Positions 1 to 40,763 of a stretch of DNA of 64,000 nucleotides are shown one piece after another. The stretch spans positions 53,172-117,171 of the forward strand of contig NIVC01003727.1 in the NCBI GenBank assembly GCA_002269645.1, written 5' to 3'. The notes below the pieces were generated by a model. It saw only the letters and a list, made by a program, of their open reading frames with translations, did not search any database and was not told the DNA's origin. Source of the stretch: Macrostomum lignano. Taxonomy: Eukaryota. A program made the position numbers and the translations under genes. Position 1 is the stretch's first letter; every line of letters starts with the position of its first letter.

Positions 1-300
1 GCCAATCTTGCGCCGCATCGACCTGTTGTTCGAGCGATTCCGTCAGCATTCAGGTCTCGGCGTTGTACAATAGGGACGGTCTCGATCATCGCCTGGAACA
101 ACGCCGCCCTCTGGCGGTCAGGCAGGGCCTCGGATTACAGGACAGCCCTCACGGAACGGCAGGCAACCCAGGCAAGTCCACGGCGAAGTCGCAGATCCTC
201 GCGAACGTCAGGCATCAGACCGCCGAGGTAGACGAACTGCTGATAGCGCGGAAGCTTCTTCACCTGCCCGTCAGCGCCTCGGCAGAAAATAGTACCCAAT
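1..300 (-). mobile_element. Degenerate RTE-like non-LTR retrotransposon fragment (region C-terminal to the RT domain)
   Basis: Minus strand reads QQFVYLGGLMPDVREDLRLRRGLAWVACRSVRAVL*SEALPDRQRAALFQAMIETV, then a frameshift, then LLYNAET*MLTESLEQQVDAA. This matches the F.YLG...D...R...AW...LLY.aETW.LT signature of RTE-type LINEs. Two stops and one frameshift. Confidence 0.8.
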
Positions 301-584
301 CTGCCCACCGTGCCAAAAGGTGGGGGCAGTTGTAGAGGCACAGACATTACTGCTAGCGATGCCAATGTAGGCTGACTTTGGAGATAACAAACAATAACAA
401 CAACAAAAAACCACGTTGTCAGACAGTCACTCGAGTCATGAGAGGTAAAAGACAAAGTCACTGGATGTAGGAGAAGGCTTGGCCACTTCACGGCTTTGAT
501 TGTCAATGCATTTTAATTAATCGATATTTGGGTGGAGTGGAGTTGCGCCTGATAAAAGAGAAAGGTCCAAGCTGATTGGCTACA

Positions 585-850
585 AGGACAACTTACTCGT
601 AAGTAGAAGGACGCTACACTCGAAATCTATGGTAAATGTTTTGACGGCAAATTTTCGCCGAAAAATACATTACAGAGATAGGAGGTTTTAATTTTTTCAG
701 CACAAAAATTGTTATTGCTTTTGATAGGAGGCAGATCCAGTGTTCATCTTTTGATATGTTGTGCCTTTCTTATTGCTCTATTTATCATTCATAAAGCTTT
801 TCCTTCAGAAATAGTTTTAAAGGCAGGTTTCACCGGAAAAATACACTATG
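585..850 (+). mobile_element. Partial copy (one arm) of the MITE at 17421-18150
   Basis: AGGACAACTTA...AAGTAGAAGGACG...CTCGAAATCTATGGTAAATGTTTTG...GCACAAAAATTGTTATTGCTT aligns closely with 17421-17630. Confidence 0.8.
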
Positions 851-1012
851 GAGATAGGAAATTTCACGATTTTCAACACTAAGACAATGATTGGGTCTCT
901 TAACAGTGTAATCACACTATTTTGTGCCTCACATGCTGCTCTAACGATTAAATCATGGCGAAAAAATATTAGGCTCGTTTAAACGCATTGTTCTGCGGCC
1001 AATCGTTATAGA

Positions 1013-1211
1013 AGCTTTATACTCGTATATTAGATTTTGAGCTGCAAAACTCAAACTGTAAGTAGCATTACTAAATGCCGAAATGTTTCCATAAAAGTTA
1101 ACTGATTTTTTTTCTGCAGTTCGCAGCTCAATACGCACTCTGCCAACGGAGTGAGAGGGTGTGCGGCAACCGCTGCTACATCCCCATCGGCAAAGGTGCA
1201 CAGGTAAATAA
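1013..1211 (+). pseudogene. Broken tandem copy of the small Cys-rich secreted peptide gene
   Basis: Same donor (GTAAGTAGCATT at 1058) and acceptor (CTGCAG, 1119) as the intact copy. Exon 2 reads FAAQYALCQRSERVCGNRCYIP. Exon 1 has an in-frame TAG (1031-1033) and no in-frame ATG. A 1-nt deletion precedes the ancestral TGC ACA GGT AAA TAA (C-T-G-K-stop). Confidence 0.7.
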
Positions 1212-1504
1212 TTAACCCACCATCTCATTTACTGTTCAGACTATGCATATAAAATTATTTATGCAAAGCCCAATGACAGAAGCTTCTTTTCCCCAAGTCT
1301 TAGTCTAGTTCCCTCTAGTGCCCTCCCAAACTCGAAATTTCACATGTTCGGAATCGCAGTTATTCAATATCCGTGAGACTTCAAGACTTCATTATCACAA
1401 TAGTCCTAAGTAAACGTGTTAGCCTGTTATTATTACTAGGTAAAATTTCATCGTCACTCAAAGATAACAACCTCTTCCAGCTATATTTGAGCACTTGAGG
1501 AGCA

Positions 1505-1738
1505 ATGAGACTCGCTATTACACTGGGACTTGCCTCTCTGGCTGTCATGTTGTGCGGCCAAACCCACACTGTAAGTAGCATTGCTAAATATGTTTACATA
1601 AAATTTTATACATACATGTAGTCTAGTGAACAGAATCTTTTGCTGCAGATCGCATCTCACTACGTCTGCCAACGAGGGGAGGCGCTATGTGGCAACCGCT
1701 GCTACAACCCTTTTTATCGCATCTGCATAGGCAAATAA
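1505..1738 (+). CDS. Small secreted Cys-rich peptide, 51 aa (exons 1505-1570, 1649-1738): MRLAITLGLASLAVMLCGQTHT-IASHYVCQRGEALCGNRCYNPFYRICIGK
   Basis: ATG plus hydrophobic signal-peptide exon. Canonical 78-nt phase-0 GT-AG intron. Four Cys in exon 2 and a C-terminal Gly-Lys. The paralog upstream conserves the Cys, GNRCY and GK. Confidence 0.75.
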
Positions 1739-2147
1739 CCAACCGATGATTTTTTCCCGTTCAAAGACGATGCGAAAAAAATTATTGCATGCAAAGCTCA
1801 ATGACTGATGCTTCGTTTTACTAGGGTTGTATTTCACAAGTTTGCAATCACAGTTATTCAATAACTGCAACAATTCATGACTTCATTATCACAATTGGTC
1901 AAAGCGTGTTTACTTTTATACGCTCGTAACTGGATAATATGGGTCTAATTTTATTCTTGAGCAAAGAATTGAACACTTCAGTTATTGTCGCGTCAAGACC
2001 GGGGGGACAGGGGGGGGGACATGTCCAGCAGTAAAAGTTATGGGAGACATTCCAAGGCTTTGTCCTCCCACCTTTGTTGACCTCTTATGGAAATCAAAAA
2101 TTTTGCTTCAGGGCGATAAAACAGCGCCTACGGCACGGCACCAAAAT

Positions 2148-2545
2148 GGTGCCTGCGGCGCCAAAATGAGTGCCTGCGGCGCCAAAATGAGTGCCTGCGG
2201 CGCCAAAATGAGAGCCTGCGGCGCCAAAATGAGAGCCTGCGGCGCCAAAATGAGTGCCTGCGGCGCCAAAATGAGTGCCTGCGGCGCCAAAATGAGAGCC
2301 TGCGGCGCCAAAATGAGAGCCTACGGCGCCGAAATGAGAGCCTGCGGCGCCAAAATGAGAGCCTGCGGCGCCAAAATGAGAGCCTGCGGCGGCAAAATGA
2401 GTGCCTGCGGCGCGAAAATGAGAGCCTGCGGCGGCAAAATGAGAGCCTGCGGCGCCAAAATGAGAGCCTGCGGCGCCAAAATGAGTGCCTACGGTGCCAA
2501 AATGAGAGCCTGCGGCGCCAAAATGAGAGCCTGCAGCGCCAAAAT
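2148..2545. repeat. 21-bp minisatellite (GCCTGCGGCGCCAAAATGAGA/T), about 19 copies
   Basis: Direct tandem repeats; explains the ACGAKMR, APQALIL and RRLSFW ORFs. Confidence 0.95.
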
Positions 2546-2911
2546 GATCGCTGAAAACACGGATTCTGAAAATAATGTACCTTAAGGTACATGTAGGAAT
2601 TTAAGTACAAAAGGAAAAATTGCAACAAAAGTGCAATTCAGCATAAGCTTCTTAGAACTCGAGAAACAAGCAAAAACCACAGCGAAATTTTGCGTGTTAG
2701 ATTGCAATTCTTGATCATTCTGCGCAATTTTGGTCGTCTAGTGCAGGAAACAAGCGCTGCGCAGTCACGCAACGATAAGGACAAAGTCTAAGCGATGTGT
2801 TCGCATAAACAAAATGAAAATTGCATCCTGGCTTCAAATCAGGGTTAAAAGCACATTCGGCAGCTTCTTTCACAATAAGGAATTTCTCGAGCCGCTTGTC
2901 ATATAGCTTCA

Positions 2912-5587
<2,676 letters not shown>

Positions 5588-6016
5588 TTCCTCGATAATT
5601 CTGTGAGACATGTTAAAAGAGAGAAACCTCTGTTAAAACAGAGTAAGTAGATGAAGTTAAACGTTTCTGTATTCATAGTTTAGTTTTTATACTAAAAACT
5701 TTTTGCGAAAAATGCTGTGAGGGGCAGTGAGACAATAAATAATGACAAATCGTGGCAGTCTTTTGGTTACTGCAAATGTTAAATGGTTTTTAGTAAAGCA
5801 TTCTAGAGAAAAAATTTCTTTGCGTGGAACGCTACAGAAACTGCACCCTTTGGCTGTTGAAATGAAGGAACAGTTTTTTGTTTGTATGAGAGAAGGATAG
5901 CTGAGATTTGAGTAAATTTAGCGACCGATCCTGAGCTTAGCGGTCAGCAAATCCAAGCGTACGTCATAATTACAACAAATCATTTCGTTCTCACGTCTCC
6001 CTCATGACGGCATCAG

Positions 6017-7840
6017 GCGGAATTTCAGCAGAATGGATGCAGCCCAGTGCGTCTGACGCTTGACTCTCGCTGCAAACTGGTTGGCTTCGTTTTTTTCTTC
6101 GTCATCGTGATGCTGGCGTTCGTGGTGGAGGTGCGGGCCTACGATGAGGACCAGAAATATGAGAACGAGCATCAGACTGGAAAGCGGAGACGGAAAATCT
6201 GCTTGGACTGCAGGGTGTCAAGACTCCTCTTCGTTGCTCTGGCTGTGATTTCAATCCTCTTGCTTGAGTGCTGGGTGCTCAAGTCTGGCCGAGCACGGCT
6301 GGCCTATGTTGGAGCAGTCAGAATTTCGAATGTTCCCGCTAGTATTTCCGCTCCTGCGGAACTGTGCAACCTGCCATCAGTTCTGTTTGCTTCTGCTTTT
6401 CTATTATTTTCTATTCTAAGCCTCGTTTTAAAGGTGCTCGGAATCGTCTGCGGTGCAATGGAAATCCGATTCGTGGATTTGTCAGGACTGGACTACACTC
6501 CACACGGCATTGTCGTGGTCATTAGACACGCGTTTTTATTCGTCTTTACTGTGCTGCAAACGCGCTTCTTTCTAAAGTACTGCAAAGCGTCCATTCAGCT
6601 TAGGCTTGGCAGATCCTGGCTGCTTCTCTCCATTGTGATGGCAGCGAATATTGGTGTGTGGTTTACCACAGTGGGCTTTGAGCTGCAGGATATCGGCAGA
6701 CCGGACAAAGCAATCGCTAATGGCACCTATTGCTATGATAAAAAGATAAACAAAATCAAGGAGTTCTTGTACCCCTTCGAAATAGAATACTACGTCATGT
6801 CATCTCTAATGGCCTACATGCTGATGTCCAACATGGGCAGGCTGGCAGAATTCCTGCACCGTCAGGTCCGCTCGGGGCCCGTTAAGTCACAGGAAATCGT
6901 TCTCAGAGTCAAGCGCATCATGCTGCGGAGTGGAGGCGCGCAAGGCGGCAGTCACGAAGATCAGGCGCAGTCCGAATTCGCTTCGATCAGAAAGCACTCA
7001 TGGATGATTTCGATTGGCGCCGTGGCTGTGGTAGCTTCGCTAACTGTCGTTGCATTCGTCCACTTCGACGACGAAAATAATCCAGTCCTCAGAATTCTGT
7101 TATTCTCGCTGCAAATGGTGTTGCAAGCAGTTTCTATGCTGGTTCTCGCCGTGCTTTTCTGCTATTTTCGAGTCGCTAAGAACCGGCGCATCGGCTCCGA
7201 CAATCTGGTCGACCGGCTGCTGCTGTGGCTTGGCGTCATCGCTATTGTAGGCAACAACGCTCACAATATTTGGAAAAATGTTAATCAAATTGAAAATGAT
7301 CTGCCAGTTGATTTTGCGTCAAATCACACGAAGGTGAGAATTGAGCTCTCTGAAAACTTTTTCGGCGCCGTTCAGTCAGTTTTGCAAGCGGTGTTCCTGG
7401 AACTGATGCTCGTTGGCGCGTTCACGCTGGACAACAAACTGCACGAGGCGTTGAAAAGGTTTTTAGTCCGATGCTTTTCAAGCGGGACCCAACCTGAAGA
7501 AGCGCAACGCCACCGTCTACGGAATTTTGTCATTGCCATGCTGAACTTTCTGATTCTGCTCAACTTTTCCGAGTGGGTCCTAAGCGCCCTCTGCTTTCCG
7601 TTGTTTTTCCAAAGAGAAGAAGACAAACACGACAATTTGTCCCTAATGCTCATGCCGCTGAAGGTTTTCTACAGGTTTCACTCGGTCATGAGCATTCAGG
7701 ACTTCAAGAAGCACCATCTGAGAGTGGAGACTGCACGAAACTCGGCAGCCGGATGTGAGTCAGACGATGAAGCGGGAGCTGACGCCGTGCTGATCCATTT
7801 CACTGATATTGAGAATGGCGAACTTGAAACCAATGGGTAA
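6017..7840 (+). CDS. OTOP: Otopetrin-family proton channel, single large exon; 5-prime end uncertain
   Basis: About 12 hydrophobic segments. Otopetrin motifs FLYPFEIEY (cf. LYPFNIEYSL), AANIGVW, VLQTRFFL and MPLKVFYRFHS. No suitable in-frame ATG before TM1; in-frame phase-0 acceptors at 6016, 6028 and 6031. Confidence 0.9.
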   Translation, partial: AEFQQNGCSPVRLTLDSRCKLVGFVFFFVIVMLAFVVEVRAYDEDQKYENEHQTGKRRRKICLDCRVSRLLFVALAVISILLLECWVLKSGRARLAYVGAVRISNVPASISAPAELCNLPSVLFASAFLLFSILSLVLKVLGIVCGAMEIRFVDLSGLDYTPHGIVVVIRHAFLFVFTVLQTRFFLKYCKASIQLRLGRSWLLLSIVMAANIGVWFTTVGFELQDIGRPDKAIANGTYCYDKKINKIKEFLYPFEIEYYVMSSLMAYMLMSNMGRLAEFLHRQVRSGPVKSQEIVLRVKRIMLRSGGAQGGSHEDQAQSEFASIRKHSWMISIGAVAVVASLTVVAFVHFDDENNPVLRILLFSLQMVLQAVSMLVLAVLFCYFRVAKNRRIGSDNLVDRLLLWLGVIAIVGNNAHNIWKNVNQIENDLPVDFASNHTKVRIELSENFFGAVQSVLQAVFLELMLVGAFTLDNKLHEALKRFLVRCFSSGTQPEEAQRHRLRNFVIAMLNFLILLNFSEWVLSALCFPLFFQREEDKHDNLSLMLMPLKVFYRFHSVMSIQDFKKHHLRVETARNSAAGCESDDEAGADAVLIHFTDIENGELETNG

Positions 7841-14055: not shown

Positions 14056-15838
14056 TTACACTGTAGCAAACTCTTCCTTTTGTTCGAACCTGTAGAGCCT
14101 GGGATTTTCTATCATACTGGGTTCAGTGCGAGCAGCCTGGCCTAAGTCTTGGTCCTGGTCCTGGTCCTGGTAATGGTGCTGGTCTTGGTCCTGATCCTGG
14201 TCCTGGTCCTGGTAATGGTGCTGGTCTTGGTCCTTGTCTTGTTCCTGGTCTTGATCCTGGTCTTGGTCCTTGTCTTGTTCCTGGTCTTGTTCCTGGTCTT
14301 GTTCCTGGTCTTGTTCCTGGTCTTGGTCCTTGTCTTGTTCCTGGTCTTGGTCCTGGTCTTGGTCCTTGTCTTGTTCCTGGTCTTGATCCTGGTCTTGGTC
14401 CTTGTCTTGTTCCTGGTCTTGTTCCTGGTCTTGTTCCTGGTCTTGTTCCTGGTCTTGGTCCTTGTCTTGTTCCTGGTCTTGGTCCTGGTCTTGGTCCTTG
14501 TCTTGTTCCTGGTCTTGTTCCTGGTCTTGTTCCTGGTCTTGGTCCTGGTCTTGTTCCTGGTCTTGGTCCTGGTCTTGGTTCTTGTCTTGTTCCTGGTCTT
14601 GTTCCTGGTCTTGACTGTCTTGGTTTCGGTTCTCCCGATTGAGAGGCATCATCTCACTTGTCGGCGTGCTACTCTTGTTTTCGTGCCTAAAACAAGCAGT
14701 CAGCCTTTGGTGCACAAGACCAATGAGACAGACGGCAACGATGACCAGGATTAATGACAGTGGCATCAAGACTGGCCAGGGAAGTTGGTTAGCCGAACCT
14801 TCGCCATAGCTAGCTGCTGTAAGAACTGAACTCGACTCCGGAGCATTAGTTGTATGCGCGTCTGTATTGGTTGAAGCACCGATAGGATTAGGTTTAGGAT
14901 TAGCATTAGCACCAGCGCTAATTGGTGTTTTTGGCGGCACCTTGTCTTCGGTGTTGTGAAGCTCCGTTGAACTAACTGCAAGGGCATTTAAAGTTATATT
15001 TATATTGTAACTAAAAATAGTTATTGTATTTGTTCACGGGGGACACCCGTGGATTTTCCTTACAAACATGGATCCAAAAGACAATGAAACCAAAATTGTA
15101 CACTTGTACACTTCCAGTGACCTTGAATTGTATAGTGCTGCATTTGATATGACCAAATTAAGTTTCGGGTAACGAAAAACCAGATGATAGAAACGATTTT
15201 ACTAAATTTAACTTGACTGCTCGCTTCTGTTTAACTCCGGTTTCTACCAACATGGAACCAAAATTTACCCACTGTAGTAACTGCAGAATGCCCACAGAAT
15301 TTACATACTGCCAGCATGGAACCAAAATCTTCAAGTTTTACCTGCACTATAGCAACTGCAGAATGCCCACAGAATTTACATACTGCCAACATGGAACCAA
15401 ATTCTTCAAGGTTTACCCACTATAGCAACTGCAGAATGCCCACAGAGTTTACATACTGCCAACATGGAACCAAATTCTTCAAGGTTCACCCACAATTAGC
15501 AACTGCAGAATGCCCACAGAATTTACATACTGCCAACATGGAACCAAAATTTTGAATCAAAAATGGAACCAAGGGAGCAAATACAACAAAGAAAGCTCAC
15601 CCTCGGTAGTGGCAGTCCAGGTGGCCGGAGGCGGATACGGGCACTCCTTGTGCTGGTTCGCGAATGTCTTCAGATAGTCTTCCGTATTTCCCTCCAGGCT
15701 GGGGCAGTCCAGGCAGTCAACCAAAGCATCTGGATATTCGCCAAGCTCGCATTTCGGCCTGACGACCGGTGCGCCGAGTGTTTGAATGGCTGAGCAGGCC
15801 AGTAGCATAAATAGCAGCCGCACTTTGGACAACTGCAT
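14056..15838 (-). CDS. Receptor paralog C, 385 aa (exons 15838-15601, 14975-14056), with Q/D/E-repeat cytoplasmic tail
   Basis: Signal peptide, CELGEYPDALVDCLDCPSLEGNTEDYLKTFANQHKEC, phase-1 intron, stalk, TM helix (PWPVLMPLSLILVIVAVCLIGLV), (QD/QE)n, then MIENPRLY...EFATV*. Confidence 0.8.
14150..14612 (-). repeat. Coding hexamer repeat (CAAGAC/CAGGAA/CAGGAC) encoding (QD/QE/KD)n
   Basis: In-frame in exon 2 of paralog C; the opposite-strand LVLV and SCSW ORFs are by-products. Confidence 0.9.
15245..15550. repeat. 73-bp tandem repeat, about 4 copies, in the intron of paralog C
   Basis: AACATGGAACCAAA...CTGCAGAATGCCCACAGAATTTACATACTGCC recurs with a 73-bp period (e.g. 15388 and 15461). Confidence 0.9.
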
Positions 15839-16749
15839 ACTTCAATTCTAGTAGATATCTCGTGGTTGAACAGAGAGGAGAGAAGATAATATTCGAAAGC
15901 TTTAATTGGTAGCGCACGCTCGCGCGATTCAGCCTAGTTATAATTTGCACATAGAATTTCCATTGAATTTCCGTGGAACAGCAACGGAAATGCCAAGATT
16001 TTCAAGTTTTGTAAGTTATAAAAATAGCCAATGCGTGTGTTGAATGTTAGCTTCTAACTAAAGAAGGCTAACGTAACTGTTTACTATGAAACAATCCATT
16101 CAATTTAGAACGGTAAAGATATGCCCCTGCTCGTGCATGTCCCCCCCCCCCCCCAAGAAATTCTAAAGACTGCACACTAAATAGCAGAAATGAAATGAAA
16201 ATTGTATTTCGCTGTAGGACAGATAATTATTTAAAATAGAGAATGATTAGAAAATTAAGCATTTTCTATTTTATGGTTAATCAACAATAATAATGATTGA
16301 TAGTACATCTGCTTACAGAAAATGCATGAGTAGCTATTTACAAGGAAAGATTTGGAATGAAGTTAATGTTTGAATCTTCATAAATAATGACACATTCAAA
16401 TATTTATTAGAATTATTATAAACACATGACGAGCGCAATCCTGGTATGAAACATTTTTGTTTATTTGGATGAATGCTCGCTGCTAGGAAGTTGATGAGCA
16501 CGATTCACATTTTCTTTGTAAGGAGAAACTCGAACTCCAACGAACCAACCGGCTATGCAGACTGTCGTTAAAGCCAGGCTTCGATTTCAGAGTCTTGCCA
16601 GAATGGGATTTGGTGTTACAAACTCTGAATCGCTTTCGCATTGACCTTCAGCCAAAAGACGACCACTCGCGGAGCCGCAATGAGTCAATTTTTTCAAATT
16701 ATTCCTCTGTGAACGCAGTCGAATGAGCACTACTTGTAACTCGAAAAGT

Positions 16750-18750
16750 TTAATCCCTTTCAGACTCGAAAAGCTTGGGATTTTCTGTCATGTTGGGATT
16801 CTTGCGATGAGGCTGTGGGTCTTGATTCCGTCTGTGGCTTCGGTCCGGGTCTTGGTCGTTGCTTGGGTCTTGGTCGTTGCTTGGGTCTTTGTTGTTGCTT
16901 GGGTCTTGGTCGCGACTGTGGCTTAGGACTTGATTTAGGCTTTGACTCTGTTCTCTGTCCAGCTGATTGGGGGGAGCATTCTCACATTTCAGGCGTCTGC
17001 TCAGCCGTTTTAAACAAGCCCGCAGATATCGGCGACAGATGTAGCACACAATGGCGAGGAAAAAAGCCAATATGACGACAACTGAAGCAATGAGCAAGTG
17101 TCTTTCCACGACTCCACCATTTCTAACAGTTGTATCAACTGGGCTCGATGCTGGAGGTTGAGTCGTAGACGCTTCGGTTTTGGTTGAAGCACCAACAGTA
17201 GGAAAGCTGCTGCCGCCTGCTGGCGTTGTTGGCGGCACTTGGCTTGTTTTCGAAACTGTAAGGCAGTTGAAGTCATATGTTCTTGTTTCTAAAAATAGAC
17301 TTTGTGCACCCGTGGGATACCCATGGATTTCCCTTCGCCAACGGGGTTCTAATGACTAATTAAAATGAATCGATATGTTTAACTCTAATATCATACTAAG
17401 TTCCGGGGATACAGTTTACAAGGACAACTTAAGTAGAAGGACGCAACACTCGAAATCTATGGTAAATGTTTTGAAGGCAACTTTTCTACACTACAGAGAT
17501 AGGAGGTTTTAATTTTTTCAGCACAAAAATTGTTATTGCTTTCGATAGGAGGCAGACACAATGTTCATCTTTTGATATGCTGTGCCTTCCGTATAGCTCT
17601 ATTGGGATTCACAAAGCATTTTTTCAGAAATTAGGATTCTATGTTCAATTATTATTCTACGTACATTTGCATGTCTAAAATGTCTAAAATGACACGGCTC
17701 AGCTCATTGGTTTTATGAATCCATTTTATAATTCTTAGCTGACTGTGTAACAATATGTGTAACCGAGATGATAAAATAAATTCACAAAACCAAAAATTCG
17801 AGCTGTGTCATGCATTTTTATGATATTTAGGTACAGGAAATATACGTAGAATAAAAAATTAGCATAGAATCCTAATTTTCTGAACAAGAAGCTTTATGAA
17901 TATCAATAGAGCTATAAGAAATGCACAACACATCAAAAGATGAACACTGGGTCTACCTCCTATCGAAAGCAATTCTTGGCTCGAAAGATAATCTTTAAAG
18001 ATTTTCTCACGTTTTATTCATACGGCCCAATAACAGTTTTTGCGCTGAAAAAAATTAAAACCTTCTGTCTCTGTGTATTTTTTCAGAAATGACTGCCTTA
18101 AATTTTTTTCCAAGAAACGAGGTTTCCGGTCCTTCTACTTAAGTCGTCCTCGGCTCTTGTATCTAAAAATAGACTTGTACACCCGTGGGATACCCATGGA
18201 TTTCCCTTCGCAAACATGGATCTAATGACTAATTAAAATTGATCAATATGCTCAACTCTAATATCATACTTTCCGGGGAAACAGTTTATCGAAAGAGTGA
18301 CCCCTAAGATATTAGAGTTGTTCAGGTAAAGAATTTCAATTAACTTGTGACGTAAACGTAGAATATGACCAACAATAACTACACAATGTCTACAGGGCTC
18401 CCATACCAGCTACATGGAACCAACAGCTCAGAGTGTAGCCAAAAATACGTACACAATGTTCACATGGTTTCCCATGGCATGAACTCACCTCTGACAGTCG
18501 AAGTCATGGTGGTCTCGACCGGAGTAGGCGGCGGCGCATACGGACACTCGGGGTGTACTGATGCGAACGACTTCAGATAGGACTCCGGGTTTTCAAGAAG
18601 GCGGGGGCAGGGCAGACAGCCAGCCAGGTCCTCATCGAAATACTTACCCGGCTTGCATCTGTGCTGCTTAATCGGATTGGCCGGTAACGGACTGGCTGAG
18701 GAGACCAACAAAACTAGCAACAGAAAGCTGCGTTTGTCTTTTAATCGCAT
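16750..18750 (-). CDS. Receptor paralog D, 255 aa (exons 18750-18489, 17255-16750)
   Basis: Signal peptide, CKPGKYFDEDLAGCLPCPRLLENPESYLKSFASVHPEC, Pro/Thr stalk, phase-1 intron, TM helix (LLIASVVVILAFFLAIVCYIC), (DQDPSN)-type repeats, then MTENPKLFESERD*. Confidence 0.8.
17421..18150. mobile_element. Palindromic MITE/foldback element, about 730 bp, in the intron of paralog D
   Basis: Termini AGGACAACTTAAGTAGAAGGAC and GTCCTTCTACTTAAGTCGTCCT are inverted repeats with 1 mismatch. Internal arms (17500-17640 versus 17870-18070) are also inverted homologs. Another copy lies at 585. Confidence 0.85.
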
Positions 18751-19950: not shown

Positions 19951-20734
19951 GGCTGTGAGGTTATCGTCCACCAGTTCTACAGCGCATTTTGGTGGCCAAT
20001 GGAAGCAGAAATGTTGCACGCAAGCAGAGAGCATTCGTCTGAGAAAATTAGTGTAAAATTTCGCTGCCTTGCTTCATTTTTAATTGCATATTTCTAAAAA
20101 ATTAATACTCGCAAGCACCCCTCATATGATGAAAAATAATTTTAAATACAAACTAGAAAGAATATTAATAACTTGAGACTTGAGCTTAGATACAATGTAA
20201 TGAGTAATTTTAGCACTGGCCATCCAGCTTCAATGATGACGCACAAAAAATTGTGAGCACACGAGCCAGCACAAATCCTAGCCAATAAAACACAATTAAA
20301 AGCTTTAATATGTAACTCACCTGCCGCACTACAACTGTTCATTGAGTTAAACAAAACGAAGTTATACAGAGCCTTTAATTCAAACAACAAAATCTCTTTT
20401 CTTTCCATTGGCATAGCTCGCAGTCTGCCTGAGCTACTGCCATTTTGCTTCTTTTCTGCCTGAGCATTTATCTGAAACTGCAGAGCTGCCCGCGGGAAAA
20501 TGTACACAATTTTCCAGGAAAAAAAACAAAAAGCAAAGCTATAGACAATGTGAGTATGAGTTGCCGTGAGCAATGTGAGCAAGACTCCGTTTTTAGCTAG
20601 CAAAAACTACATGACTATTTTCGGGTGCTCGCTGAGCAATGGCTATTTTTAGATTTTGGAAATGCCATGGAATTTCAGGGAATTTTGAGCTGCTGTGGAA
20701 TTGACTGAGCCCGGCTGTTAACTAGCCTATTCAG

Positions 20735-22920
20735 TCTATCAACCAGTCTATCCCATTTATCAACTAATCTATATCTATCAACTAGTCTATCCCATATATC
20801 AACTAGTCTATTCCATCTATTAACTAGTCTATCCCATCTATCAACTAATCTATCCCATCTATCAACTAGTCTATTCCATCTATCAACTAATCTATATCTA
20901 TCAACTAGTCTATCCCATCTATCAACTAGTCTATCCTATCTATCAACTAATCTATCCCATCTATCAACTAGTCTATCCCATCTATCAACTAGTCTATTCC
21001 ATCTATCAACTAATCTATATATATCAACTAGTCTATCCCATCTATCAACTAGTCTATCCTATCTATCAACTAATCTATCCCATCTATCAACTAGTCTATT
21101 CTATCTATCAACTAATCTATATCTATCAACTAGTCTATCCCATCTATCAACTAGTCTATTCCATCTATCAACTAATCTATATCTATCAACTAGTCTATCC
21201 CATCTATCAACTAGTCTATCCTATCTATCAACTAATCTATCCCATCTATCAACTAGTCTATTCTATCTATCAACTAATCTATATCTATCAACTAGTCTAT
21301 CCCATCTATCAACTAATCTATCCCATCTATCAACTAGTCTATTCCATCTATCAACTAATCTATATCTATCAACTAGTCTATCCCATATATCAACTAGTCT
21401 ATTCCATCTATTAACTAGTCTATCCCATCTATCAACTAATCTATCCCATCTATCAACTAGTCTATTCCATCTATCAACTAATCTATATCTATCAACTAGT
21501 CTATCCCATATATCAACTAGTCTATTCCATCTATCAACTAGTCTATCCCATCTATCAACTAGTCTATTCCATCTATCAACTAGTCTATCCCATATATCAA
21601 CTAGTCTATCCAATATATCAACTAGTCTATCCAATATATCAACTAGTCTATCCCATACATCAACTAGTCTATCCAATATATCAACTAGTCTATCCATCTA
21701 TCAACCAGTCAGTCCCGTCTATATATAAACTAGTCTATCCCATCTATCAACTAGTCTATCCCATATATCAACTAGTCTATCCAATATATCAACTAGTCTA
21801 TCCCATCTATCAACTAGTCTATCCCATATATCAACTAGTCTATCCCATATATCAACTAGTCTATCCAATATATCAACTAGTCTATCCAATATATCAACTA
21901 GTCTATCCAATATATCAACTAGTCTATCCAATATATCAACTAGTCTATCCCATCTATCAACTAGTCTATCCCATCTATCAACTAGTCTATCCAATATATC
22001 AACTAGTCTATCCCATATATCAACTAGTCTATCCAATATATCAACTAGTCTATCCCATCTATCAACTAGTCTATCCCATCTATCAACTAGTCTATCCCAT
22101 ATATCAACTAGTCTATCCCATCTATCAACTAGTCTATTCCATCTATCAACTAGTCTATCCCATCTATCAACTAGTCTATCCCATATATCAACTAGTCTAT
22201 CCCATATATCAACTAGTCTATCCAATATATCAACTAGTCTATCCAATATATCAACTAGTCTATCCAATATATCAACTAGTCTATCCAATATATCAACTAG
22301 TCTATCCCATCTATCAACTAGTCTATCCCATATATCAACTAGTCTATCCCATCTATCAACTAGTCTATCCCATATATCAACTAGTCTATCCAATATATCA
22401 ACTAGTCTATCCCATCTATCAACTAGTCTATCCCATCTATCAACTAGTCTATCCCATATATCAACTAGTCTATCCCATCTATCAACTAGTCTATTCCATC
22501 TATCAACTAGTCTATCCCATCTATCAACTAGTCTATCCAATATATCAACTAGTCTATCCCATATATCAACTAGTCTATCCCATCTATCAACTAGTCTATC
22601 CAATATATCAACTAGTCTATCCCATCTATCAACTAGTCTATCCCATCTATTTATCAACTAGTCTATCCAATATATCAACTAGTCTATCCCATATATCAAC
22701 TAGTCTATCCCATCTATCAACTAGTCTATCCCATCTATCAACTAGTCTATCCCATCTATCAACTAGTCTATCCCATATATCAACTAGTCTATCCAATATA
22801 TCAACTAGTCTATCCCATCTATCAACTAGTCTATCCCATCTATCAACTAGTCTATCCCATATATCAACTAGTCTATCCCATCTATCAACCAGTCAGTCCC
22901 GTCTATTTATCAACTAGTCT
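20735..22920. repeat. 21-bp minisatellite (TCAACTAGTCTATCCCATCTA), about 100 copies
   Basis: About 2.2-kb tandem array; source of the RLVDRWD ORFs. Confidence 0.97.
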
Positions 22921-23439
22921 ACACCTGCTTTAATAATCTATCCATCATATAATTATAATTATAGAAAACTATAACTATGCTACTTGAATAAATTTAGTAA
23001 CAATAAACAAAAAATTATTTATGGTTTTATGTTATAAAGTTAAACGCTGCTGAGCGAATTGGCACAAACACTTAGACATATGAATAAAAATGTTTATTCA
23101 TAGCATGAAAACATTTTTTTTTATTATAAAAACAAATAAAATTCATAATTACTACATAAATTGACAAGTAAAAAGTACACCGCGGACATTAAAAAATGCA
23201 GGCAGCAATACGGTTAAGTGAAAAATGCTTAAATATGCTTAAATTTCCCTCGCAAAAATGAATCAATTTTCGATAATAGCAACTTACAGGCACGCATTGA
23301 AAATGACTGGCTGTCAATCAAAATGCTTGCAAAAATTTTCAAGCAGCTGACAAGCAACGGGTCCCCGAGTGGGTCAATCGCAATAGAAATAAACGTATTT
23401 GAGTCTAAGTACGGGTCGGTACGTAAGTCAGTCAATAGA

Positions 23440-23682
23440 TGGGTCAGCAAGTACAGCAGGTGGGTCAGCACACAGCAGGTGGGTCAGCACACAGCAGGTG
23501 GGTCAGCATACACAGCAGATGGGTCAGCACACACACACACAGCAGGTGGGTCAGTATACACACACAGCAGATGGGTCAGCACACACACACTCAGCAGGTG
23601 GGTCAGCACACAGGTGGGTCAGCACACAGGTGGGTCAGCACACAGGTGGGTCAGCACACAAACAGCAGATGGGTCAGCACGA
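23440..23682. repeat. Imperfect CAGCAGGTGGGTCAGCACA(CA)n repeats just 3-prime of the LRR1 stop
   Basis: Variable-length tandem units. Confidence 0.85.
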
Positions 23683-25258
23683 GAAGTAGCGGCACAGCTC
23701 GAACCGCCGCTCGAAGCACGCAGCGGAGCAGAAGTGCAGCATGACGGGCACCGTAGCGACGCCGCCGTTACCGTCAGAGTCGACGGGCGCGGGCAGCTCG
23801 TAGCAGGCGGCCAGGTGCCGCGGGTGCACGGGCAGCGGGCAGGGGGCCACCCGCGGGTCGCAGTGACGCCTGCAGGCGGCGCAGGCAGGCATTGCGGCCA
23901 GGTCGTCCAGGAGGTGCCACGGCAGTGGCGGCGGCGACTTTGAACGAAAATCGACAACCAGCCGACGAACGACGGCCAGACAGAGCGAGGCGAGGTCGGG
24001 CACGGGCAGGCGGACGGGGAGGCGGCCGGGGTCGCGGCAGCTGAACGGCTGGCCGGAGCCAATGGACAGCCGGTCGAGTCGGACAGCCGGCCGAGGCAAA
24101 AGGCGAAGGCGGTTGCCGTCGAGGGCGAGGGAGCGCAGCAGCGGCACGGCAGGCAGGCAGTCGGGCAGGCGGGTCAACCGGTTGCCGCAGAGGTCGAGGC
24201 TTCGCAAGGCGGCGAGGCGGCCGAGCTCAGAGCCGAGCCAGGCCAAGCAGTTGTCGCGGAGGTCCAGCACCGCCAGACTGCTGGCAAGGGGGCCGGCGGC
24301 ACGGAGTTCGAATCCTGGAAATGTCACCAGGCGATTGCCAGGCAGGCTGAGCTCCGTTAGCGGCAGACGATTGATTGCGTCCGGCAGAGACTCGAGCTGG
24401 TTGCCATGGATACGTAGGACGCTGAGCTGGCCCAGCCGGCAGAGGCGGGCGTCGAAGCGACGCAGGCCGATCGGACCGACGCTGAGCTGCACCAGGTGAG
24501 GCGGGAAGTCGCCGGCGGAGGGGTAGGCCTCCCGGCTGGACACCTGGCAGGGCGGGCGATGAATTAATTGATTCACTGTATTGGCTCGCGAGCTTTTGTT
24601 CGGGTCACCCGAGGGGGGGGGGGCAGAAGAGCTAGTCCATATACTAAATCTTCAGTTAGGAGGGGGTCGCTTTAGTCGTGTGGGTTAGTGCTGCAGAGTT
24701 AAGCATAATTGGCCGTGGTTAGTATACAGTTAATTAGGCCTGCCAAGGTTATCTCCTTAGGCAGCAATGCCAAATTAAGCGGAGCTCCAATTCAGCCCAC
24801 AGAGCAGCAGCTCCGACCTGTCCTGAACTCACCGTCAGCTGAGTTTGTGTACGCGCCCGCACCCGTCGCTTGTCCAACGACGTCAGCGAGGAGTAATCCA
24901 AGCCGGAGCCTAGCAGCAGGCGTCGGTCAACCCCACGACCTCCGGCTACGTCGCCGAGAAGGCGAGCCAAGCCGGCCAGCTGGCGGGGCTCGGCGCCGCT
25001 AATGAGCAGCTGCACGTGCGGCCCGGTCAGGCACAGGGTGAGCCGGCCCTCGGACAGGAAGCGGGTGTGCAACCGCTCAATGTTGGCGGCGGACACCGGC
25101 CAGGCCTGGCAGCCGCTGCCGCCCCACTGGCAGGCGAGTCGATAGCGACCGTCGCGGCCGCACAGGCTCAGCAGCGCCCGGCGGGCTCGCGGAGGCGGGC
25201 CGCCACCGCAGCCGGTGCCGCCGGTGAGCAGCACGGCTAGCTGACAGTCGATTCGCAT
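23674..25258 (-). CDS. LRR1: Leucine-rich repeat protein 1 (CRL2 substrate receptor, PPIL5/LRR-1), 431 aa (exons 25258-24833, 24543-23674)
   Basis: N-terminal MRIDCQLAV...RFLSEGRLTL (PIF1/LRR1 PH-like). Junction QLT|VSSREAYP aligns with the LRR1 ITSKKDYP..FP region. LRRs, a BC-box-like VPDLASLC, and C-terminal CAAC...FCSAAC. Confidence 0.8.
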
Positions 25259-25479
25259 TGCGCCGTTCGCCCCCAGCTGTTGCGCTGAATGAATCAGGGC
25301 CAAGGACTTTTATAATTTCTTGCGGGAAAAAAGGACTACTAAGTGCTTAGTGCTAGGCAGCTGTTCAAGCTCTATCAAGGATTACTAAACAAATAATATG
25401 TAACCTACGAGACTTCCTGCGGTGCGTTTTATGAGCGGAACTTATCTTAATCTGTCCTGAATATCATAAAAAATGCGCC

Positions 25480-26141
25480 AGCTACAGATGGGGCGACAGC
25501 TACAGATGGGGTGACAGCTACAGAGGAGGTGACAGCTACAGAGGGGGAGACAGCTACAGAGGGGGCGACAGCTACAGATGAGGTGACAGCTACAGATGGG
25601 GTGAAAACTACAGATGGGGTGAAAACTACAGAGGGGGTGACAGCTACAGATGGAGTGACAGCTACAGATGGGGTTACAGCTACAGATGGTGTGTGACAGC
25701 TACAGATGGAGTGACAGCTACAGATGGGGTGACAGCTACAGAAGGAGCGACAGCTACAGATGGGGTGACAGCTACAGATGGGGTGACAGCTACAGATGGT
25801 GTGTGACAGCTACAGATGGAGTGACAGCTATAGATGGTGTGTAACAGCTACAGATGGGGTGACAGCTACAGATGGGGTGACAGCTACAGAGGGGGTGACA
25901 GCTACAGAGGGGGAGACAGCTACAGAGGGGGTGACAGCTACAGAGGGGGAGACAGCTACAGAGGGGGTGACAGCTACAGAGGGGGAGACAGCTACAGAGG
26001 GGGCGACAGCTACAGATGAGGTGACAGCTACAGATGGGGTGAAAACTACAGATGGGGTGACAGCTACAGAAGGAGCGACAGCTACAGAGGAGGTGACAGC
26101 TACAGAGGGGGTGACAGCTACAGAGGGGGCGACAGCTACAT
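25480..26141. repeat. 18-bp minisatellite (GACAGCTACAGATGGGGT)
   Basis: Tandem array; source of the TATDGV and VAVTPS ORFs. Confidence 0.95.
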
Positions 26142-27995: not shown

Positions 27996-30900
27996 TCAGT
28001 CAGTAAACAGAAACTCGGTCTCCAGCAGGATGTACTCAACCACCTGATTTTGGAACATCAGGTTGGAGGTCAGGCAGAGGCCGCCATCCGCATCGCCACT
28101 GGCCGGCCAGACCAGATTCGGGCCCATCATCAGGGCGACATTCTGGGAGCTCATCTGGTTGCGCTCGCTGCACTGCACAACCCGGGTGAGATGGTGGAAC
28201 AGCAGGCGCAGGGTGTTGTAGTGCGCCGGTGGCAGCGTGCGCAGCACCTGCCGGATTGACTCGCGTTTGGCGCTGGGCTTGGCGCTGGACTGGTAGTGCT
28301 CGGTGATCAGCTGCGGGTGGACAGGTGTCTACTCCGATGGACAGGTGTCTACTCCGATGGACAGGTGTCTACTCCCGATGGACAGGTGTCTATTTCCGAT
28401 GGACAGGTGTCTATTCCCGATGGACAAGTGTCTATTCCCGATGGACAGGTGTCTATTCCCGATGGACAGGTGTCTATTCCCGATGGACAGGTGTCTATTC
28501 CCGATGGACAAGTGTCTATTCGCGATGGACAAGTGTCTTAATGGTGCACAGTGAACAGGTGTGTTTTCACAGTGAGCAGGTGTGTTTTCACAGTGAGCAG
28601 GTGTGTTTTCCACAGTGAACAGGTGTGTTTTCACAGTGAGCAGGTGTGTTTTAACAGTGAACAGGTGTGTTTTCCACAGTGAACAGGTGTGTTTTCACAG
28701 TGAGCAGGTGTGTTTTCACAGTGAACAGGTGTGTTTTCCACAGTGAACAGGTGTGTTTTCACAGTGAGCAGGTGTGTTTTCCACAGTGAGCAGGTGTGTT
28801 TTCACAGTGAGCAGGTGTGTTTTCCACAGTGAACAGGTGTGTTTTCCACAGTGAACAGGTGTGTTTTCACAGTGAGCAGGTGTGTTTTCCACAGTGAGCA
28901 GGTGTGTTTTCACAGTGAGCAGGTGTGTTTTCACAGTGAGCAGGTGTGTTTTCACAGTGAACAGGTGTGTTTTCCACAGTGAACAGGTGTGTTTTCCACA
29001 GTGAACAGGTGCCTTTATAAGGATGGGCGTGTCTATTCAGGGTGGACAGGTGTCTATGGTGGAATGTGTTTGCTCAGTAAAATTAGCTGTCTAAATAAAC
29101 TGTAGACAGGTGTGACAGTGGACATGTTTGTTGACCTCAGAAAACCTTAGCCTTGTAACAACGAACCTGAAAAGTCGCTGACGGAATCAGTGGCTCTCTC
29201 AGCTCTCTTAGAAAAGTTTTCAACGCCGAGGTGAGCACGAAGATGTCCCAGCCGGTGGTCAGGTCGTAGTCCTCAGTCTGGTCAACCAGCAGCCGCAGCT
29301 TCTGCACGGTGGCCGCGTTGCCGCCCAGCCGGTAGATGCCCTCAGTCTCCAGGCCGTGGCCCTCGATAGCTTCAATGCAGCGGCTTAGAAAGCGAGGCGC
29401 GTCCGAGCGCTCGTGCGCGCAGATCTGGCGCAGGGTGGAGCCGAACACGGGCTCGTTCCGCACGATGCCTTTCTTCTCCAGCTCGTCCAGCGCCGGCCTA
29501 CGCCTGAAAAAATCGTTCAGCCTCTGGGCTATGGACACTCGCTGCTTGCTCTCGCGGGGCTTCGGCTGCGGCGGAGTCTGCGACTGCTGCTGCTGCTGCT
29601 GCTTGCCCCAGCCAGAGTGCGATGAGGCCGACTGCTGCGGAGTCTGCTGCTGCTGCGAGCTAGGCTGGTACATGCGCTTAGTTGCCAAGTCCTTGGCGTA
29701 CCTGTGTATGCGGAATTGAAACACACTCGTGAGTGCTGTGTGCTGCCTTACAGAATTGGATCTCCAACTACACTACAGGATCTACCCTAACCTACAGGAT
29801 CTACCTATCCTACAGGATCTACCTATCCTACAGGATCTACCCTATCCTACAGGATCTACCCTACACTACAGGATCTACCCTACACTACAGGATCTACCCT
29901 ACACTACAGGATCTACCCTACACTACAGGATCTACCCTACACTACAGGATCTACCCTACACTACAGGATCTACCCTACACTACAGGATCTACACTACACT
30001 ACAGGATCTACCCTACACTACAGGATCTACCCTACACTACAGGATCTACCCTACACCACAGGATCTACCCTACACTACAGGATCTACCCTACACTACAGG
30101 ATCTACCCTACACTACAGGATCTACCCTACACTACAGGATCTACCCTACACTACAGGATCTACCCTACACTACAGGATCTACCCTACACTACAGGATCTA
30201 CCCTACACTACAGGATCTACCCTACACTACAGGATCTACCCTACCCTACAGGATCTACCCTACCCAACAGGATCTACCCTACCCTACAGGATCTACCCTA
30301 CCCTACAGGATCTACCCTACACTACAGGATCTACCCTACACTACAGGATCTACCCTACACTACAGGATCTACCCTACCCTACAGGATCTACCCTACACTA
30401 CAGGATCTACCCTACACTACAGGATCTACCCTACACTACAGGATCTACCCTACCCTACAGGATCTACCCTACACTACAGGATCTACCCTACACTACAGAA
30501 TCTACCCTAGTCTACCCTGCCATACACGAACTACCGTAATCTAGAGAATCCATTCTACGATTTCATTTCAATCTCCAGAAACGTCAAGAGCTACTCACTC
30601 CAGCGCCAAGCTCCACTGCTTGCGGGCCCCTGGTTCATCCCAGTAGAGCAGCATGTCGCAGTCGGCGCTAGGATACAGATCCGCCTGCCGCCCAAGCGAC
30701 GAAGAGTCGTAGCCGGCACTGTCGCCACCGACGCCGCCACCGCCAGCGACGTAGCGAAGCCTTAGCGGTCCCGTCGAAGGATCGTCCGATGGAAGCGGCG
30801 GAGGCGCTGGCGGGCCGCCAGACGGGTCCACCTCGACGGCGGCCACGGCCAGGGCCAGTTCCGGCCGCTTGTCCGAGCGGGACCGGTAGAACAGCAGGTC

Positions 30901-33900
30901 CGGGCCAGTCAGCACCAGGTGGTAGGCCTGCCGCTTGCCGCTGGGTGACTTGGCCGAGGACTTCTTAGACTCCTATGGGATGGCGGAAAGAGAGTTCAGA
31001 TTGAGGGGTTCAGGAAGGAGGGAAAAGGATGGGATCAGGAGGGACGGGAATGGGGAAGGAGGGAATAGGATGGGATCAGGAGGGACGGGAATGGGGATGG
31101 AGGGAATAGGATGGGATCAGGAGGGACGGGAATGGGGAAGGAGGGAATAGGATGGGATCAGGAGGGACGGGAATGGGGATGGAGGGAATAGGATGGGATC
31201 AGGAGGGACGGGAATGGGGAAGGAGGGAATAGGATGGGATCAGGAGGGACGGGAATGGGGAAGGAGGGAATAGGATGGGATCAGGAGGGACGGGAATAGG
31301 GGAAGGAGGGAATAAGATGGGATCAGGAGGAACAGGGAATAGGGAAGGAGGGAATAAGATCATATTAAGATGGGATCAGGAGGAACAGGGAATAGGGAAG
31401 GAGGTAATAAGATCATATTAAGATGGGATCAGGAGGAATAGGGGAATGGAGAAGGAGACAATACGATGGGATCAGGAGGGACAGTGGGATAGGGAATAAG
31501 CTGGGATCAATATGAGAACAAAATGGGATTTAAGAGCGACATCTATTAGGATCAGACAGGGAAAGAGTCTCGAATAAGAAGGCATTGCTAGGAGCTTTAA
31601 GAAGGAAATCGCATTCAAGCAATACCATTAGAAAATGGAAACACAGCGGCCCTCACCTTGCACCAGCCCCTGCCGTCGGCAGCCGAAGGGCCTTCACGGG
31701 GCTCTCCTTGCGCGTCTCCTGCAGCCGGCCACCCACCGGCAGGGAGATCTCCAGCTTGGGCCGCTGTGGCTGCTGCGACTCCGGCGTCTGCGCTGGAGCA
31801 GCCGGCTCCGCCGACCTCTCCAACTCGGCGATGACCGCGGCCGATTTAGCCGACGAAGAAGGCTGCTGAGATAGCAGAGCCTGAGACTGCTGGCCCTGCG
31901 CCAGGAAGCCCATGTTCATTGAGGGCTCGCCGAATAGGAATTTCCTGGGCTCGCCGGACCCGCCCTCCTCAACCCGCCAGCCGGGCAGGCCGGGCGGCAG
32001 CGTCGCTGATGAGGTGGCCGGAATCTGAGGAGAAGCGGTGTAAAAGTACAATAGGTACTTCTCTCGGATTTACAGTACAAGAAGTACTTTTATGACATTT
32101 AAAAGTGCACGAAGTACTCTTTTAATGAGCTAACTACAAGATCATTTTTCGAGGAAAAATGCGCACCAAACTACTTATAATAGCACTGTTTGATTGTAAT
32201 GAAACCAATTTAAATACGACGTTAATTTCATTAAGAAAAATCGGCACTTCAGTTAACATGCGACAACATTAAATGCTAGCGCAGCTATATACGATTTCAC
32301 ATGACCAACAGACTGCTAATGGCATTTAAGATCGTAAAATAACAGAAACATTGCTACTACGCAGCTGCCAGCTCCCAGGCCTGGCACTGGGCAGAGTCAA
32401 CCAGTCACCAAAAGCCTTTATAAACGAATTACTAGAATTGGCTACATGCGGAATATACACTTTGAATATTATTAATAGTTCCCTGAATAAACTGCAACTG
32501 TGCGCATGCAAGCCAGCGACAGGTAGGCGGTAAGGTGAATTATGAAGGCTAGCAACACCAATACACACACGGATATCAACCACTCAGCGCACCTAAATCA
32601 CTGTAAATCTTTCTACAACCCTAATACTGAAAACATAATTAAAGTAAACAGAGAACTCTGTAAACCTAATTAAAGTACACAGAGAACTCTGTAAACCTAA
32701 TTAAAGTACACAGAGAACTCTGTAAACCTAATTAAAGTACACAGAGAACTCTGTAAACCTAATTAAAGTACACAGAGAACTCTGTAAGCCTAATTAAAGT
32801 ACACAAGAGAACTCTGTAAACCTGATTAAAGTACACAGAGAACTCTGTAACCCTGATTTAAGTACACAGATGACATTTTAACCTTAATTAAAGTACACGG
32901 GAAACTCTGAGTCTCTGCAACTCAGTTTAAAGTGCTTGGGGAACTCTTTAGTTCTGAAAAGTACACTAGAAACTGCTTTCACACTAAGACATTTCTAATC
33001 ATGCAGTGTGGATGATTTTTTCTAGCACAACAAAAACAAATTTATGATAAATTGAAATACATTCGGCAATCCAGGTACCAGTGCTGACATTAGCGATTGT
33101 GCAAGGTGCTAAAAAATTAATAAACAATAAATTTACCGCGCATCTCAAAGTCGGTCGCCAGTTAAGATCAGACTTTACCAACTGAGGCTTTCTATTATTG
33201 GTCTGCAAAGTGGGAGATAATTTAATGCAGATTGGGGATTGTTGAAAAATTTGGGAAGAGAACCGATGAAAGATGAGGAAACTGATGAGGAAATTGGGAA
33301 GAGACACCTGATGGAACTGGTGAGGGATCTGGGAATTCGGGAAGAGACACCTGATGGAACTGGTGAGGGAACTGGGAATTTGGGGAGACACCTGATGGAA
33401 CTGGTGAGGGGTCTGGGAGGGATCTGGGAATTCGGGGAGACACCTAATGGAACTGGTGAGGGATCTGGGAGATCGAGGAGACACCTGATGGAACTGGTGA
33501 GGGATCTGGGAATTCGGGGAGACACCTGATGGAACTGGTGAGGGATCTGGGAAATCGGGGAGACACCTGATGGATCTGGTGAGGGATCTGGGAATTCGGG
33601 GAGACACCTGATGGAACTGGTGAGGGATCTGGGAAATCGGGGAGACACCTGATGGATCTGGTGAGGGATCTGGGAATTCGGGGAGACACCTGATGGAACT
33701 GGTGAGGGATCTGGGAATTCGGGAAGAGACACCTGGTGGAACTGATGAGGGGTCTGGGAATTCGGGAAGAGACACCTGGTGGAACTGGTGAGGGATCTGG
33801 GAATTCGGGAACAGACACCTGATGGAGCTGGTGAGGGATCTGTGAGGGATCTGGGAATTAGGGAACAGACACCTGATGGAACTGGTGAGGGGTCTGGGAG

Positions 33901-38968: not shown

Positions 38969-40763
<1,795 letters not shown>

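Follow-up and report, generated by a model that had tools for sequence, protein, structure and literature searches.

A Macrostomum lignano gene predicted to encode a secreted mini-protein made of one unit of a four-cysteine, CBM52-like repeat

CBM52 (Pfam PF10645, Carb_bind) is a beta-1,3-glucan-binding module that was first defined in S. pombe Eng1 and that also occurs in the secreted M. oryzae GBP MGG_05232, for which binding has been inferred (PMC6980582; bioRxiv 10.1101/2025.07.03.663104). Modules of this type share with the small peptide described here a predicted secreted location and a cysteine-rich CG..CY.P..C repeat signature, and the Magnaporthe GBP, too, joins a signal peptide to the module without an enzyme domain. 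They differ from it in being fungal and in being described by a 49-position Pfam model, whereas the peptide is a single animal unit of ~25 aa. A second described system, the galaxin repeat (PF24748, Galaxin_repeat), resembles the family to which the peptide belongs in being rich in cysteine and arrayed in tandem with a similar period, and in occurring in secreted proteins of invertebrates. Tachyplesin and gomesin, amidated beta-hairpin defence peptides with two disulfides, offer a third point of comparison. Our own search of the literature for the cysteine-spacing motif of the peptide found no paper describing it.

We analysed a window of 64,000 nucleotides of M. lignano DNA, in which a 51-aa precursor without annotation is encoded by two exons. 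Translation of the window exactly reproduced the gene as it had first been read, with the following parts.

1505..1570, plus strand: coding part of exon 1, with the ATG at 1505; 22 aa, MRLAITLGLASLAVMLCGQTHT, the predicted signal peptide
1571..1648, plus strand: intron of 78 nt, phase 0, GTAAGT...TTTTGCTGCAG
1649..1738, plus strand: exon 2, phase 0, 29 codons, IASHYVCQRGEALCGNRCYNPFYRICIGK, then TAA (1736-1738)
1471..1480, plus strand: pyrimidine-rich CCTCTTCCAG, read from the sequence, 24 nt upstream of the ATG

The initial annotation had proposed an intact small open reading frame with a predicted signal-peptide exon, a canonical intron and a four-cysteine mature part, and each of these elements was borne out by translation. 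Exon 2 holds one complete C-x6-CG-x2-CY-x-P-x5-C module, its cysteines spaced C-x6-C-x3-C-x7-C. Because an in-frame TGA lies at 1496-1498, three codons 5' of the ATG, the ATG at 1505 is the earliest possible start in the exon. The N-terminus of the precursor shows the n-, h- and c-regions of signal peptides (MR, then a hydrophobic core of 14 residues whose Kyte-Doolittle means over 9-mers reach 2.5, and finally CGQTHT), and phmmer aligns exon 1 with the signal peptides of the small relatives P0009, P0011 and P0032 from query positions 11-13 onward. Alignment with relatives and the hydrophobicity profile place the predicted signal peptide directly against the first unit, as in the repeat family. 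The tract CCTCTTCCAG may serve as the acceptor site of either a spliced leader or an exon of the 5' UTR; a spliced leader could be joined there, given that trans-splicing affects 38.8% of the genes of M. lignano (PMC5730564).

A word-indexed protein search with the 51-aa product gave no match. Using phmmer against 1.84 billion representative proteins at E <= 1e-3, we obtained 36 matches, the best at E 1.8e-30 and seven at E <= 1e-10. Matches P0012, P0013, P0027 and P0038 were dropped as low-complexity repeat noise that does not belong to the family. Nearly all of the remainder are secreted proteins composed of 2-21 tandem units of C-x6-C-G-x2-C-[YF]-x-P-x5-C, and the spacing is exactly C-x6-C-x3-C-x7-C in 101 of the 162 repeat units. 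The peptide keeps the consensus positions C7, C14, G15, C18, Y19, P21 and C26. We built a family HMM from the 162 repeat units, which come from unrelated proteins, with the query left out. Exon 2 scored 40.1 bits on this model (E = 5e-11 among 4365 six-frame pieces from the window and three loci), a score that matches those of genuine units in multi-repeat proteins. Judged by sequence, the match of exon 2 to the repeat family is far beyond chance, and the predicted mature peptide represents a single unit of a four-cysteine module of ~25 residues that is widespread.

Members of the family come from the tardigrade Hypsibius exemplaris, the springtail Folsomia candida, the bdelloid rotifers Adineta steineri and Rotaria socialis, a EukProt protist and metagenomic contigs, one of which is clearly bacterial (TatC, SerRS and SurE lie near P0036). 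No glycan-active enzyme was found near P0036 on that contig, so its surroundings do not hint at a function. The animal members carry either no name or a wrong one. Counting the flatworm, the spread of these CBM52-like repeats over bdelloid rotifers, tardigrade, springtail, flatworm, protist and bacteria is patchy, which could reflect an ancient origin or horizontal transfer among soil or sediment micro-organisms.

The nearest relatives are small proteins of 80-126 aa (Adineta steineri P0043, Rotaria socialis P0016, P0009, P0011, P0032 and P0036, the metagenomic ones being both eukaryotic and bacterial). Like the peptide, they carry a signal peptide directly before units with the identical C-x6-C-x3-C-x7-C spacing, and P0011 has in common with it the string ...LLMCGQ... 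at the end of the signal peptide. They are uncharacterised and differ in having two to three or more units; the rotifer genes have no intron, whereas in the Macrostomum gene a phase-0 intron separates the signal peptide from a single unit. The same module recurs in Hypsibius exemplaris OWA54156.1 (automatically named 'Tenascin-X') and Folsomia candida OXA55783.1, which with 8-21 units each are, unlike the peptide, large multi-unit proteins. All relatives detected have at least two units, and single-unit relatives would fall under the significance limit of the search, so that a lack of them among the matches carries no information. The Macrostomum peptide does not form such an array, as each gene copy encodes a single unit that ends in the linker Gly-Lys and a stop. 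No additional unit was found in the 64-kb window or in a 35-kb M. lignano locus on contig NIVC01002778.1 (hereafter L001). A profile of whole small proteins gave only 13 matches, among them no Macrostomum member.

The link to CBM52 comes from Pfam searches with these relatives. PF10645 was matched by 20 of 40 relatives at E <= 0.01 (best 5.5e-11), and of ten scanned individually three lay over its 25-bit cut-off (P0004 at 40.4, P0005 at 32.0 and P0007 at 30.8 bits). The peptide alone reached 14.8 bits (E 0.035), under the 25-bit gathering threshold; a low score is expected when one unit is set against a 49-position model. The loose resemblance to cysteine repeats from fungal glucanase carbohydrate-binding domains that was suggested early on has turned out to be real homology, with relatives over the PF10645 cut-off. 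The peptide is probably a glycan binder, glucan binding being known for fungal CBM52 only. The galaxin resemblance suggested alongside did not hold up. The peptide has no di-cysteine, and PF24748 is matched by one of the 40 relatives at 18 bits against a cut-off of 28, with no match in the peptide or the other 39. Galaxin membership was rejected on the missing CC pair and the missing PF24748 match in the peptide. Weak matches of relatives to the IGFL, ECR1_N and zinc-ribbon families of Pfam were set aside as cysteine-pattern noise, and a profile search of PDB sequences found no relative; its one match, 'CYDPET' in a Kelch protein made by design, is spurious.

We modelled the peptide with AlphaFold2 from 37 aligned units, using a 31-aa exon-2 construct whose first two residues are intron-encoded. 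The model (pLDDT 80) has a single beta-hairpin at ALC-GN-RCY, construct residues 14-21, and termini of lower confidence. P0026, a relative with three units, was modelled with pLDDT >90 across the repeats as a stack of beta-hairpins, two per unit. The second hairpin of each unit crosses the unit junction, with the Cys4-bearing end of one unit paired to the Cys1-bearing start of the next. The positions of the strands point most plausibly to intra-unit disulfides C1-C3 and C2-C4. On these models a single unit could form both disulfides and could not form the junction hairpins, which makes its stability or full binding function doubtful. As Foldseek against the PDB gave nothing significant for either the peptide model or the three-unit relative, no solved fold can be named for them.

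The peptide ends in G-K-stop, which had been taken as a C-terminal amidation signal. In alignments with multi-repeat relatives its Gly falls on the conserved Gly of the inter-repeat linker, C-x-x-G-x-[IV]-C, so that G-K-stop can be read as a truncated linker and amidation is not needed to account for it. C-termini in the family are varied and generally basic, and relative P0014 also ends in CTGK. These comparisons lend no support to the claimed amidation signal, and nothing points to the neuropeptide or toxin product that was suggested with it. Amidation is chemically possible and unsupported by any comparative evidence. On such a reading the terminal Lys would be trimmed and the Gly converted to give an Ile-amide, yielding an antimicrobial, toxin-like or neuropeptide-like product. 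It draws on the presence of G-K-stop at the end of a sequence with a predicted signal peptide, on the mildly cationic mature part (pI 8.9, net +2.8), on a fast-evolving exon such as defence peptides often have, on the same C-T-G-K end in P0014, and on the modelled, disulfide-pinned hairpin, whose shape recalls tachyplesin and gomesin by analogy. The likeness to those peptides extends to size class, two disulfides, predicted hairpin, mild cationicity and a Gly-basic C-terminus; there is no sequence relationship and the cysteine spacing is different. Set against this reading are the linker Gly that explains the Gly of the peptide, the varied and basic ends of other family members, the lack of dibasic processing sites in the peptide and the lack of any known neuropeptide, antimicrobial peptide or toxin among its sequence relatives. 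We regard a processed, amidated product as quite improbable.

Just upstream of the intact gene lies a second, degraded copy, which we call copy A (the intact gene being copy B).

1034..1895, plus strand: tandem duplication (~513 bp), unit A 1034-1401 and unit B 1547-1895, from blastn and MAFFT
1034..1057, plus strand: 3' remnant of exon 1 of copy A (ILSCKTQT), the last 24 nt of the exon; no ATG
1058..1119, plus strand: homologous intron of copy A, 62 nt, GTAAGT...TTTCTGCAG
1120..1211, plus strand: pseudo-exon 2 of copy A, FAAQYALCQRSERVCGNRCY, then a 1-nt deletion and the shifted frame PHRQRCTGK with stop

Units A and B are 70-83% identical. The exon-1 remnant of copy A has a TAG 8 codons before the donor, and the 1-nt deletion in its pseudo-exon sits after TGCTAC. 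The first 19 nt of the intron (GTAAGTAGCATTGCTAAAT) are kept at 18 of 19 positions in copy A and at all 19 in the copy on contig NIVC01002778.1. On the family HMM copy A scores 22 bits, the match stopping at the frameshift, and the L001 copy about 16-17 bits. The degraded neighbour reported earlier is real and does conserve cysteines and a GK; the GK first pointed out (in IPIGKGAQ) belongs to the wrong frame. The fourth Cys, GK and stop of copy A are conserved yet out of frame because of the 1-nt deletion. The locus is a tandem gene duplicate in which, among the three known copies, only unit B is intact; the other two, copy A and the copy on contig NIVC01002778.1, are defective.

This arrangement bears on whether exon 2 belongs to a longer repeat gene, a concern raised by the initial annotation itself. 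The homologs are indeed longer, multi-repeat proteins, and the copy A exon as it stands (1120-1203) is 84 nt long, begins and ends in phase 0 and has immediately behind it a donor, GTAAAT at 1204, that could be spliced to 1649. The remaining part of that concern is not upheld, as each copy here has a signal exon or its remnant, an intron and a stop. Copy A lacks a start codon and a signal exon, a TAG breaks its exon-1 remnant, and the GTAAAT that could act as its donor originated in sequence homologous to the stop region of copy B. In copy B the frame opens with a separate ATG-signal exon and is closed by the TAA at 1736-1738, and neither the 64-kb window nor the 35-kb M. lignano locus contributes additional units. 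The start, signal-exon and donor evidence from copy A led us to reject a two-exon 'A+B' gene model, and we consider it very improbable that exon 2 is a repeat exon of any longer gene.

The peptide gene occupies a stretch of ~2.3-2.4 kb between a minus-strand ORF that ends near 506 and, near 2794, the first plus-strand feature that has a match in L001, the Ala-rich ORF itself starting at 4181. Neither of these neighbours has a Pfam match. Introns of the GT-AG type are present in the window, and its other recognisable coding features are listed here.

6047-7840, plus strand: otopetrin-like ORF, uninterrupted over 597 codons; Pfam Otopetrin, 35 bits
14056-14940 and 16750-17238, minus strand: two paralogous ORFs, each rich in Ser/Thr/Pro at the N-terminus, with a single hydrophobic segment and an acidic tail
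23674-24576, minus strand: exon of a leucine-rich-repeat protein
29137-29724, minus strand: RhoGAP domain exon
38969-39919, minus strand: S-adenosyl-L-homocysteine hydrolase, the C-terminal 316 aa in one exon; AdoHcyase_NAD, 271 bits
53593-53964, plus strand: C3HC4 RING finger exon

The most conserved gene of the window is the S-adenosyl-L-homocysteine hydrolase. The otopetrin-like ORF shares 83% identity with BOX15_Mlig033405g1 of M. lignano. The annotated M. lignano otopetrin homolog, P0001, is modelled as 947 aa across 15 kb, and the UniRef entry A0A1I8ITR4 ('I/LWEQ domain-containing', P0002) overlaps the start of the otopetrin homolog, which suggests that the public annotations contain gene models that are fused or mis-joined. 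The acidic tails of the two paralogous ORFs, (DQ/EQ)n or (DPSN)n, derive from 12-bp and 18-bp minisatellites, and these ORFs have just sub-threshold Pfam matches (Zip, Ctr). Tandem repeats are prominent throughout. TRF reports 68 rows, and a rough sum of the main mini- and microsatellite arrays comes to ~16 kb of the 64 kb, or about a quarter, more than the 15% genome average for M. lignano (PMC5730564). Examples are the arrays at 20720-22906 (21 bp x 105), 33292-34995 (43 bp x 39) and 44695-46061 (43 bp x 31). Many of the arrays yield long spurious ORFs in the ORF list.

A further copy of the locus is found on M. lignano contig NIVC01002778.1. Positions 1-6031 of the window are collinear with L001 in reverse orientation, in blastn segments of 93-96% identity, which suits the redundancy of a genome in which blocks of at least 95% identity add up to 180 Mb and tandem repeats make up 15% (PMC5730564). 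By this collinearity L001 is a homeologous or allelic copy of the peptide locus. Its peptide copy reads LAAHYTICQRGKALSGNRCYKPFYRSCMGK followed by a stop. We searched L001 for exon 1 and copy A and found no homology; in place of exon 1 and unit A it has unrelated sequence of ~1 kb, in which lies a 14-bp minisatellite, CTGACAGTCCCTAG. The L001 copy has lost its second cysteine to Ser, a derived change when polarised with copy A, and the intact window copy retains every ancestral Cys.

The surroundings of the peptide copies also vary. A 21-bp minisatellite, CGGCGCCAAAATGAGAGCCTG, with 19.7 copies lies just 3' of the peptide gene at window positions 2136-2547, and the corresponding array spans ~1.5 kb in L001 (3368-4893), a several-fold difference in length between the two locus copies. 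Within L001, positions 1-7376 (the region of window 1-6031, inverted) adjoin two further and more diverged copies (~86%) of the I/LWEQ-like and otopetrin region, at 14669-15901 and 22107-26020. These copies represent a local duplication, inverted or segmental, unless they are perhaps an artefact of the assembly.

Between the window and L001, exon 2 differs by 8 non-synonymous and 1 synonymous changes and by one codon indel, giving a dN of 0.128 that exceeds the dS of 0.055. Mismatches number 9 in 90 exon positions against 11 in 389 positions of the 3' flank (Fisher p = 0.005; the numbers are small). On this alignment no purifying selection is evident in the exon, and relaxed or diversifying evolution would fit either way. 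The excess of change in the exon over its flanks is greater than neutral decay alone would give and suits diversifying selection at least equally well. The peptide mini-family is turning over quickly, so that function of its last intact copy is plausible yet unproven.

We found no transcript or protein record for the peptide gene in a protein collection that includes transcript-derived assemblies. The peptide is missing from protein collections: look-ups in the collection of 15 billion proteins with transcript-derived assemblies gave no entry for the spliced product, for the unspliced ORF of exon 1 or for the ORFs of exon 2. This absence is a weak negative because gene callers rarely call ORFs of 51 aa. 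Neither AATAAA nor ATTAAA occurs within 400 nt 3' of the stop, where there are just an AATAAC at 1860 and an AGTAAA at 2030. These results have to be weighed for the possibility that the gene is a non-functional relic, that is, the last open copy of a decaying tandem mini-gene family, intact by chance or recently silenced and making no stable peptide. Several observations would agree with such a relic: copy A has a frameshift and lacks a start codon, the L001 copy is missing exon 1 and has lost Cys2, dN is above dS with the exon outpacing its flanks, no canonical poly(A) signal was found, the product is absent from the protein and transcript-derived collections, and one unit is unable to form the junction hairpins of the multi-unit fold. 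Yet the ORF, start codon, both splice sites, phase and stop are all intact, the four cysteines and the consensus G, Y and P are kept at a score of 40 bits that is level with genuine units, and the change in the exon over that in the flanks is more than neutral decay alone explains and at least as compatible with diversifying selection. We view a relic as the main competing explanation, a real possibility that we nonetheless hold to be somewhat doubtful.

The locus is best read as a small two-exon Macrostomum gene, or as one that was functional until very recently. There is, in our estimate, about an even chance that it encodes a secreted mini-protein of a single glycan-binding or surface-binding module. 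In this scheme cleavage near T22/I23 would release a 29-mer from the 22-aa signal peptide. The 29-mer would fold as one beta-hairpin around CGNRCY, pinned to the N- and C-terminal tails by two intra-unit disulfides, of which C1-C3 and C2-C4 would be the most plausible pairs, with the terminal Gly-Lys as a truncated inter-repeat linker. As a small extracellular binder of glycans (beta-glucan-type) or of surfaces, the peptide may then act, for example, in the gut, in mucus or in defence. A more specific version, in which a single-unit CBM52-type derivative was co-opted as a fast-evolving, possibly amidated, secreted defence or recognition peptide against beta-glucan-bearing fungi, oomycetes or diatom prey, seems to us unlikely. 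If it were true, the non-synonymous excess and the birth and death of copies would reflect diversifying selection and not decay, and the peptide would be the smallest natural form of the CBM52-type carbohydrate-binding fold.

What the locus means depends on whether it is expressed. If it is not, there is nothing unusual in such a young cluster of pseudogenes, given a genome that is rich in repeats and was recently duplicated. If it is expressed, it would be a minimal natural version, with 29 residues and two disulfides, of a widespread and almost unstudied cysteine-repeat module whose sole characterised relatives bind beta-1,3-glucan, and it would provide an example of a repeat unit that survives as a stand-alone secreted peptide. 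Such a peptide would also make a handy synthetic probe for the ligands of the animal and bacterial members. The family itself takes CBM52-like repeats well beyond fungi, to rotifers, a tardigrade, a springtail, a flatworm, a protist and bacteria.
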